DNA from: Paragordius varius
Lineage: Eukaryota; Animalia; Nematomorpha
NCBI GenBank assembly: GCA_964247055.1
Contig: OZ176057.1
Coordinates: 4,340,001-4,404,000 of the forward strand
Direction of reading: 5' to 3'
Length of the DNA stretch: 64,000 nt
In this document: piece by piece, positions 10,600 to 42,119 of the stretch
How positions within the stretch are numbered: position 1 is the first letter of the stretch
How the letters are laid out: every line of letters starts with the position of its first letter
Position numbers and translations under genes: made by a program
The notes under the pieces: model-generated
Told to the model about the DNA's origin: nothing
Seen by the model: only the letters and a program-made list of their open reading frames with translations
Databases searched by the model: none

Positions 10600-10964
10600 C
10601 ATACTTTATTATGATAAATGTCATCTATTAAACACGTCCGTTTGTTCATAGAGATACTCAGTATTTTGCAATAAATTTTTACATCAAAATTTCCTTCTTA
10701 AAAAATTATTTTAAAATTAACGAAGTTTATATGAAATTATAAATGTCATAACTAATCAAGATAACTCTTCTAATCCTTTTAGATATCGGGTTATTAATTA
10801 TTTGATTAGCATTGGGCCTAACAAAAATATTGTAATGGTAATTAACGGATTGGTTATGTTTTGTAATGACAGTTGTTAAAATCCGTAATATAACGATAAA
10901 GGATAATTAAATAGAATTAAATGAAATTATATATAGAAATTATAAACGATATGTGAAACCCTTC

Positions 10965-11030
10965 GTCAATAGTAATCGCAGATTAGTTTCGTGCTTGTTA
11001 GCACTCATCAGTACGACACAATTATTTGAA
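10965..11030 (-). ncRNA. Type I hammerhead ribozyme motif HHR1
   Basis: Minus strand: TCGTA CTGATGA GTGCT-AACA-AGCAC GAAA CTAA TC|TGCGA. Catalytic core, stem I and stem II are intact; stem III has a C-A mismatch relative to the consensus ACTAGT. Confidence 0.85.
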
Positions 11031-11299
11031 TTGGGGTTTTCACATATCGATTCCGTATATATATCCAACTTTGCAATTTTGGTATAAATGCAGTTGGTTA
11101 TACGAATTTAAATTAAATTTAATGTAATTTATGAAAATTAAACTGAAAATTTGAAAATAAACTGAAAATTAACTCTAGGGGTGAGCCTAGATTTAGAGTA
11201 TAGCTACTTAGGGATTTCATAGAAATCAATTTAATAACTAATTTATACCAAAATTGCAAAGTTGGATATATATACGAAATCGATATGTGAAAACCCCAA

Positions 11300-11362
11300 G
11301 TCAAATAGTTGTGTCGTACTGATGAGTGCTAACAAGCAAACTAGTCTGCGATTACAATTAAC
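11300..11362 (+). ncRNA. Type I hammerhead ribozyme motif HHR2 (core deletion)
   Basis: TCGTA CTGATGA GTGCT-AACA-AGCA [CGA deleted] AA CTAGTC|TGCGA. Palindromic stem III (ACTAGT) and the GUC site are intact. Confidence 0.75.
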
Positions 11363-11749
11363 GAAGGGTTTCACATATCGTTTATAATTTCTATTTATAA
11401 TTTCATTTAATTCTATTTAATTATCCTTTATCGTTATATTCCGGATTTTAACAACTGTTATTACAAAACATAACCAATCCGTTAATTACCATTACAATAT
11501 CATCTTTATCTTATGTTTCTTATCATAATAGAGTGCTTCTTAGTTATTAAATTGATTTCTATGAAATTCCTAAGTTGCTATACTCTAAATCTAGGCTCAC
11601 CCCTAGAGTTAATTTTCAGTTTATTTTCAAATTTTCAGTTTAATTTTTATAAATTACATTAAATTTAATTTAAATTCGTATAACCAACTGCATTTATACC
11701 AAAATTGCAAAGTTGGATATATATACGAAATCGATATGAGAAACCCCAA

Positions 11750-11814
11750 GTCAAATAGTTGTGTCGTCTGATGAGTGCTAACAAGCACGAAATTAGTCTG
11801 CGATTACTATTGAC
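11750..11814 (+). ncRNA. Type I hammerhead ribozyme motif HHR3
   Basis: TCGT CTGATGA GTGCT-AACA-AGCAC GAAA TTAGTC|TGCGA, with predicted cleavage after C11798. Distal stem I GTCAAATAGT/ACTATTGAC lies beyond a UGUG/UU internal loop. One A is missing from proximal stem I. Confidence 0.85.
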
Positions 11815-12289
11815 GAAGGGTTTCACATATCGTTTATAATTTCTATTTATAATTTCATTTAATTCTATTTAATTATCCTTTATCGTTATATTACGGATTT
11901 TAACACATGTTATTACTAACAAAAATATGTTTATAGCCTTTCTATACAATGCAAATTTGTCTCTTCAAAAATGTAAAAAGTATAAAAATACCTATCTTAA
12001 CCCGTATTTATTAATTACATCGTACATACAGCAGTCAAATAATTGATGAAAAAATTATATATATTTTACCATAAAATTTTTGAATTTAACAAAAAATGTA
12101 ACATTTACTGATTTTGCTGTTTGTTTCATCTTTAAAATTATCTGCTAAAAACTTATTTATAATTATTTCTTTATTTAACACGAGAAGAAGGTTTGATAAT
12201 CTAACTTTACAAAGCAACTTTAAAAAAATAGTTTGTTTATAATAGTCGAAAAAATTAAAATGTAAAATGGTTAAGTCTATGTAAAATAA

Positions 12290-41699: not shown

Positions 41700-42119
41700 A
41701 AATCAGAAAATGTTATGGCGGTAGGCGCCATCTCCTTATAAGTTATAAATCAAGAGGAGTATAGATAGTTAGTCCACCGAGTTGCAAGTTGGATTTATTA
41801 TTATATCCTAATTAACAGAGACTATGAGAAACCACGTTTTGACTCTAAGCTCTATAATATTCATTTCCCCGACTCTATTCGGTTTCAAATTCTCTAAAAC
41901 TCATATATATAATTCCTGAACTGGTAGTGTTTACCCGTGTTCATTATGTCTGACTGATGAGTCCACAACAAGGACCAAACGCGTCTCACACTGTGACACG
42001 TGGTAAAAACTGTCAACAAAATTTGGCTTCACGTAGTCTCTGTTGTTAACTAGGATATACTAATATATCCAACCTGCAACTCGGTAGACTAACTATCTAT
42101 ACTCTTCTTGATTTATAAG
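41700..42119 (+). mobile_element. Non-coding Penelope-like/retrozyme-type element, family 2
   Basis: Approximately 85-bp inverted arms (41743-41825 / 42034-42118) enclose a hammerhead motif. No similarity to family 1 outside the ribozyme core. Left boundary approximate. Confidence 0.75.
41936..42000 (+). ncRNA. Type I hammerhead motif HHR4 with a G12->C change
   Basis: TGA CTGATGA GTCC-ACAACAA-GGAC CAAA CGCGTC|TCA, with palindromic stem III ACGCGT and distal stem I CGTGTTCA/TGACACG. GAAA reads CAAA at 41976. Confidence 0.8.

Follow-up and report, generated by a model that had tools for sequence, protein, structure and literature searches.

Penelope-like elements (PLEs) leave a characteristic record of their insertion: heavy 5' truncation, partial tandems that form pseudo-long terminal repeats (pseudo-LTRs, or pLTRs), an adjacent inverted and 5'-truncated copy, and a 30–40-bp tail that is often found at one end only; hammerhead ribozymes are located in the pLTRs (Craig et al., PMC8557442). 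On AT-rich DNA, the purified PLE protein of Anolis cleaves both strands and extends them, and it initiates reverse transcription (RT) internally, at a pair of neighbouring sites ~90 nt beyond the hammerhead cut; the stretch between these sites forms the tail. Ribozyme cleavage is not required, and the protein works mainly on unprocessed multi-copy RNA (Frangieh et al., PMC11167929). Metazoan non-LTR retrozymes were defined by Cervera and de la Pena in 2020 (PMC7229834), and a 2026 preprint by Li, Clavereau and Pollet (10.64898/2026.07.22.740005) argues that retrozymes are non-autonomous PLE derivatives. Here we describe a repeat of this kind in the nematomorph Paragordius varius, in a 64,000-nt stretch of genomic DNA (assembly GCA_964247055.1, contig OZ176057.1, positions 4,340,001 to 4,404,000 of the forward strand; hereafter, the window). 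Positions 10831–11915 of the window very probably represent one old insertion of a ~450-nt non-coding, non-autonomous PLE derivative, that is, a non-LTR retrozyme.

The insertion is a single composite in which an inverted arm is joined head-to-head to 1.5 tandem units of ~450 bp. Both flanks carry the same 13 nt, CTAACAAAAATAT, as a first-pass annotation of this DNA had noticed; the left copy (10818–10830) abuts the element end and the right copy (11916–11928), an exact repeat, is flush with the other end, forming a target-site duplication. Unit position 1 was set at window position 11241. The inverted arm (10831–11241, minus strand), delineated from inverted repeats and BLAST pieces, is 5'-truncated and comprises unit 300–452 plus 1–256. 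It is 95–98% complementary to the forward copy in the repeat tables, and its 3' end faces outward and stops at unit 256, overlapping the duplication by 4 nt, in what we term the 'long' RT start zone. The first forward unit (11241–11692, plus strand), defined by direct repeats, is 452 bp long and differs from the family majority at eight positions and by a 2-nt deletion within its ribozyme. The second forward unit (11692–11915, plus strand) is partial, covers unit 1–223 and stops in the 'short' RT start zone. An internal copy of the 3' module at 11449–11500 (plus strand) contains both zones, unit 209–223 and 250–258, with AUUACAA in each, and a G+C-rich palindrome, TCTAGG...CCTAGA, occupies 11590–11607 (plus strand), with unit position 364 (window 11604) just after. 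The forward segment 11241–11915 repeats at a spacing of 449–452 bp, so the tandem described in the annotation is real and its 450-bp period is approximate rather than exact. The unit is non-coding, as had been stated: on a circular concatemer, reading without a stop extends for 61–77 codons at most. The arms lie 0–3.5% from the family majority, and the window copy is an ordinary, somewhat decayed family member.

One inverted and two tandem hammerheads had been proposed, and all three are present, with their cores at 10976–11016 on the minus strand (A) and at 11314–11351 (B) and 11764–11803 (C) on the plus strand; together with the long stem I hairpin they extend over 10944–11052, 11278–11383 and 11729–11835, respectively. 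The family consensus, obtained by aligning 39 ribozyme regions found at 24 loci, comprises stem I UCGUA/UGCGA, the box CUGAUGA, stem II GUGCU-AACA-AGCAC, GAAA, and stem III ACUAGU, with the cut after GUC. Hammerhead A keeps all catalytic positions and has ACUAAU instead of ACUAGU in stem III. Hammerhead C has an intact catalytic box, lacks one A of stem I and reads AUUAGU in stem III. Hammerhead B retains the consensus stem III; its AGCAC-GAAA segment reads AGCA-AA, and because this 2-nt deletion at the stem II/G12 junction removes the closing C of stem II and/or G12, B is presumed to be inactive. The consensus, A and C conform to the type I core (C3 U4 G5 A6 N7 G8 A9, G12 A13 A14, A15.1–U16.1, H17) and B does not; the earlier claim of three copies of the core CTGATGA...GAAA thus holds for A and C but, strictly, not for B.

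The hammerhead has three helices around its core, and helix I is the open-ended one. Stem II has 5 bp and an AACA loop, stem I has 5–6 bp and is extended by two further helices, and stem III consists of the 6-nt palindrome ACUAGU alone, whose pairing into a helix requires two ribozyme copies. The distal helix on stem I noted in the annotation is well supported: its 18-nt arms prolong stem I into ribozyme hairpins of ~106–109 nt that fold more stably than dinucleotide shuffles (A, −32.6 kcal/mol, z = −5.1; B, z = −6.0; C, −43.1 kcal/mol, z = −6.8; family ribozyme hairpin, z = −7.3). The window has two occurrences of the pattern CTGATGA-N(8–26)-CGAAA where 0.03 would be expected, and the presence of the pattern is not due to chance.

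The unit belongs to a sizeable family. A search against the 110.5-Mb genome from which it comes gave 435 candidates, from which 123 BLAST pieces with 80–100% identity were scored. A 25-mer of the ribozyme core, with up to two mismatches, matches the genome 231 times, compared with 0 matches for a reversed control, and the exact 41-nt consensus ribozyme occurs 79 times genome-wide and 0 times in the window; further copies, for which the annotation had called, are thus plentiful. From cut to cut the unit measures 444–455 bp and has a GC content of 26%. Copies diverge from the majority sequence by a median of 2.3%, and variation is lowest in the ribozyme core, with a non-consensus rate of 1.2% versus ~4% in the 3' region. 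A more distant relative (L052), 71% identical, keeps the catalytic core and stem II and has U-A in place of one C-G pair in stem I; its outer and distal helices are kept but are built from different sequence, and its 3' motifs are nearly unchanged, the 3' module being the best conserved stretch. A 26-nt core gave 0 matches in a metagenome scan. The window itself contains a decayed copy at 615–838, 70% identical to unit 50–273, in which the box is ruined (CTGTTGA) and the 3' motif CGTCATTTACC is recognisable.

Insertions at the 24 loci analyzed in detail share one signature. Their 3' ends are confined to a narrow region, and 5' truncation is variable. Forward arms hold 0.6–2.4 tandem units with seamless junctions, and an inverted arm is frequent, joined to the forward arm 5' end to 5' end, which leaves the two 3' ends on the outside; wherever two perfect ribozymes lie close together, the first is on the minus strand and the second on the plus strand. 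Exact duplications of 10–18 bp flank the insertions at 12 loci, and the end positions of these 12 were used to map the RT start zones. After correction for the duplication, one outer end falls at unit 209–223 and the other at 250–258 in 9 of 11 two-armed insertions. The two zones are thus ~35 nt apart, with AUUACAA in both, and one is used per insertion end. The duplication commonly overlaps the continuing unit sequence by 0–6 nt, a figure somewhat inflated by how the duplication is delimited. A stem-loop predicted around the first start zone is not significant (z = −1.4), and no 3' junction examined carries an A-rich or microsatellite tail.

Private variants are common to the arms or tandem units of the same insertion in 49 cases (28 tandem and 21 inverted overlaps), and differences within an insertion are mostly singletons, arguing that each insertion was made from one template sequence. 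At the 5' side, six independent arms start exactly at unit 364/365, and four loci begin with TAGAG/AGAG next to unrelated flanks. Unit 364 is a candidate RNA 5' end, or transcription start, and these starts point to a linear, ~345-nt RNA in which an uncut ribozyme occupies the middle.

Two peculiarities of individual loci deserve mention. Insertions at L013:1328-2058 and L020:1501-2320 occupy the same site in two copies of another short repeat and have the same 13-nt duplication, ATATT[A/T]TGGATAT, with a mirrored arrangement of arms, which suggests either that this site is a favoured target or that the inverted arms have rearranged with each other. At L004:1501-2328, the first RT start zone has lost the same 3 nt in two internal tandem units (ACAAATAACC), and these units have further private changes in common that the terminal unit does not have; part of this array therefore arose after insertion.

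Autonomous PLEs are present in the same genome. Matches to the GIY-YIG domain led to an open frame of 787 aa (L043:6346-8709, minus strand; C1:4914348-4916708), whose database relatives carry reverse transcriptase and GIY-YIG domains at ≤35% identity. Copies of this frame are 95–100% identical and a nearly identical inverted partial copy adjoins it; the element looks recently active. A protein search revealed further PLE lineages at 30–67% identity to the 787-aa frame. All sampled lineages have inverted plus forward copies, and two have alternative 3' ends and 10–14 bp duplications. Several contain minimal hammerheads with other helices 220–440 nt past the open reading frame, and four element lineages of the genome other than the unit's own have the minimal architecture of its hammerhead, built from different helices. 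The dependence on a protein acting in trans that the annotation had postulated thus finds candidate providers of the same architecture, with reverse transcriptase and GIY-YIG domains, in this genome.

By analogy with the published PLE mechanism, we infer the following course of insertion. A PLE reverse transcriptase/GIY-YIG endonuclease, supplied in trans, would cut the strands of an AT-rich target 13 bp apart and extend both 3' ends on the element RNA. Copying would begin not at the RNA 3' end but at the two internal zones (unit 209–223 and 250–258), 100–150 nt downstream of the cut site. One target strand would give rise to the inverted arm ending at 256 and the other to the 1.5-unit forward arm ending at 223; the 5' ends of the two arms would then be joined to each other, and the stagger between the cuts would become the 13-bp duplication. 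The template would have been longer than one unit, most likely a transcript that read through a tandem master copy and stayed unprocessed. The annotation had envisaged one multimeric cDNA. Two cDNAs, one primed from each DNA strand and both started inside the RNA, fit better; the outer ends of the window copy are unit 256 and 223 and not the ribozyme cut site at 107/108. Its broader assignment, to non-coding hammerhead retroelements of the Penelope/retrozyme kind, agrees with an insertion signature that matches that of PLEs (PMC8557442, PMC11167929). The ribozyme, whose activity is putative, is a conserved part of the cis module, yet the ends of most insertions are set elsewhere.

The main competitor is a strict retrozyme cycle, in which the RNA cleaves itself at GUC|UGCGA, closes into a 450-nt circle and is reverse transcribed by rolling around it to give multi-unit insertions; this route, which may coexist with PLE integration, we consider improbable. 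The retention of 79 perfect ribozymes and the low variation of the core (1.2% against ~4% in the 3' region) are what it would predict, as are the seamless tandem junctions and the private variants common to the units of one insertion. The ends of the cut-to-cut monomer (444–455 nt) are held by stem I, a pairing that would suit ligation, and the circular fold gives z = −4.6 and −5.9. Three arms begin 2–9 nt after the cut site, and circles are documented in other animals (PMC7229834). Insertion 3' ends, however, lie 100–150 nt past the cut site and never at it. Most arms contain one sense ribozyme, with two in tandem at few loci, and the six starts at unit 364/365 point to a linear RNA with a defined 5' end and an uncut ribozyme. 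The Anolis PLE mainly uses unprocessed RNA (PMC11167929). Of the units in the longest array (2.4 units), two have nine private variants in common that are absent from the third; this array therefore owes some of its length to later DNA duplication, and we dropped it as evidence for rolling-circle copying. A combined scheme, in which the unit also exists as a self-cleaved, ligated circular RNA that a Penelope enzyme copies for more than one round, appears similarly unlikely.

Several observations weigh against our preferred reading, a non-autonomous PLE derivative mobilized in trans. All three window ribozymes are mutated, and none equals the family consensus. The Rfam check proposed in the annotation gave no match at the gathering score for the window: the best model, Hammerhead_HH9, reaches 21.6 bits for A (E = 0.02) and 21.5 bits for C, compared with a threshold of 52. 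Minimal hammerheads of the PLE type are not known to have been among the sequences used to build the Rfam hammerhead models. With permissive E-values, nothing else matched except microRNA models that hit the palindrome, and we rejected these as chance. The loci analyzed in detail are only the 24 best-scoring ones. Finally, no autonomous element with the unit or its ribozyme was found among the seven sampled PLE lineages, and local alignments of the unit with the seven PLE tails do not rise above shuffles (z = −1.1 to 1.7). The closest resemblance is to the lineage PLE2, whose terminus aligns with the terminal 42 nt of the unit at both start zones (GTTATT..., TTCATTAC, ATTACAA); it amounts to only ~27 of 42 nt, at the terminus, and the PLE2 copies examined hold no open frame >202 aa, the lineage being seen only as truncated copies. 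PLE2 copies also end at two sites ~35–40 nt apart, and PLE2 is the best candidate for a possible partner.

The missing match to a coding element bears equally on the suggestion that the copies are 5'-truncated remnants, namely pLTRs, of a coding Penelope element and form no separate family. Heavy 5' truncation and pLTR-borne hammerheads are typical of PLEs (PMC8557442, PMC4209133), and Xenopus retrozymes resemble PLE pLTRs (bioRxiv 10.64898/2026.07.22.740005), which lends this suggestion some appeal. Yet each 450-nt unit leads straight into the next in tandem, none of the 24 loci contains a coding segment, and the GIY-YIG matches have no such ribozyme core within 5 kb. As neither unit nor ribozyme occurs in the sampled PLEs and the alignments stay at the level of shuffles, the copies are not simply pLTRs of these seven lineages, and we regard the pLTR origin, which the annotation had named as the outcome that would remove the novelty, as very improbable. 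A PLE fragment lying beside one copy (L058) was considered as a partner and rejected: the fragment is split by the unit copy, which is therefore a nested insertion.

Hammerhead-bearing elements resembling short interspersed elements (SINEs) exist in schistosomes, a precedent for a SINE-like element moved by a long interspersed element (LINE), and the inverted arms superficially look like the terminal inverted repeats of a DNA transposon or foldback element. We think either origin highly implausible. The lack of A-rich or microsatellite tails at the 3' junctions argues against a LINE, and the variable arm lengths and duplications of 10–18 bp argue against a DNA transposon; the pairing of a short and a long tail has been described only for PLEs (PMC11167929).

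Because retrozymes have been described in PMC7229834 and in bioRxiv 10.64898/2026.07.22.740005, this kind of element is already known in other animals. The Paragordius family resembles metazoan non-LTR retrozymes in being a non-coding, low-GC repeat (150–450 bp in that group) with a type I hammerhead, tandem copies, duplications of >4 bp and a proposed dependence on PLEs, and it shares with amphibian retrozymes a weak stem III that needs two ribozymes. Unlike metazoan retrozymes, the Paragordius copies are dispersed, short (0.6–2.4 units) and mostly two-armed rather than arranged in long arrays, and are known here from genomic DNA. The unit has the same minimal type I ribozyme as PLEs with pLTR hammerheads, stem III being a tiny palindrome (PMC4209133, PMC8557442), and like PLE insertions its copies are 5'-truncated, partly in tandem and accompanied by an inverted 5' copy (PMC8557442). 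A 30–40-bp tail at one end, the apparent use of both strands as primers and AT-rich targets are features of PLEs including Anolis Poseidon (PMC8557442, PMC11167929), with which the unit also has in common two internal RT start sites ~90–150 nt past the ribozyme (PMC11167929). In contrast to PLEs, the unit has no open reading frame and consists only of a junction module, comprising a putative promoter region, the ribozyme and the RT start region, and apart from the ~42 terminal nt aligned with one lineage it has no significant similarity to the seven PLE lineages sampled in its own genome. Non-autonomous PLEs also occur among Chlamys elements, for example MRC1 of Chlamydomonas; Chlamys and Naiad lack canonical hammerheads and belong to the N-terminal-endonuclease clade (PMC8557442).

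We found no published link of hammerheads or Penelope elements to Nematomorpha, and the word 'nematomorph' does not occur in PMC7229834. The family thus adds to the recent retrozyme–PLE connection a young, small and easily aligned example from an animal lineage with no earlier description, and leaves the picture of what such elements are unchanged. Its genomic copies display the marks of two-site internal RT initiation, of the use of both target strands and of one template sequence per insertion, three features shown so far mainly in vitro and for one lizard element. The defined 5' end at unit 364 and the conserved 3' motifs could guide experiments. Should the circular RNA exist, one small RNA would offer a natural and compact setting for studying ribozyme processing together with PLE-type internal RT initiation.

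Several additional observations concern the PLEs of this genome and other hammerhead-like sequences. Three PLE tails (L060:3030-3075, L061:3000-3045 and L043:9425-9470) contain hammerhead-shaped motifs with the box UUGAAAA or UUGACAA, in which C3 is replaced by U3 and G8 by A8 together, so that the known C3–G8 pairing is kept; in the L060 and L061 motifs, stems I and II and GAAA are in place. One PLE2 fragment recurs 7–9 kb from at least seven contig ends, beside a 54-bp tandem array (L046:1-2073). Its positions are C7:7718, C1:8647, C5:7825, C2:8750, C28:8400, C3:14411360 and C4:14188223, and fragment and array together look like a shared subtelomeric block. A single-exon VPS51 homologue adjoins one PLE; its best match is from the nematomorph Gordionus (33% identity, E = 2e-107), and the next match has E = 1e-45. 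Another hammerhead-like motif in the window, unrelated to those of the insertion, occupies 41945–41995 inside a near-palindromic element of ~400 bp; it reads CUGAUGA-GUCC-ACAACAA-GGAC and continues with CAAA where GAAA would be expected, so that C replaces G12.

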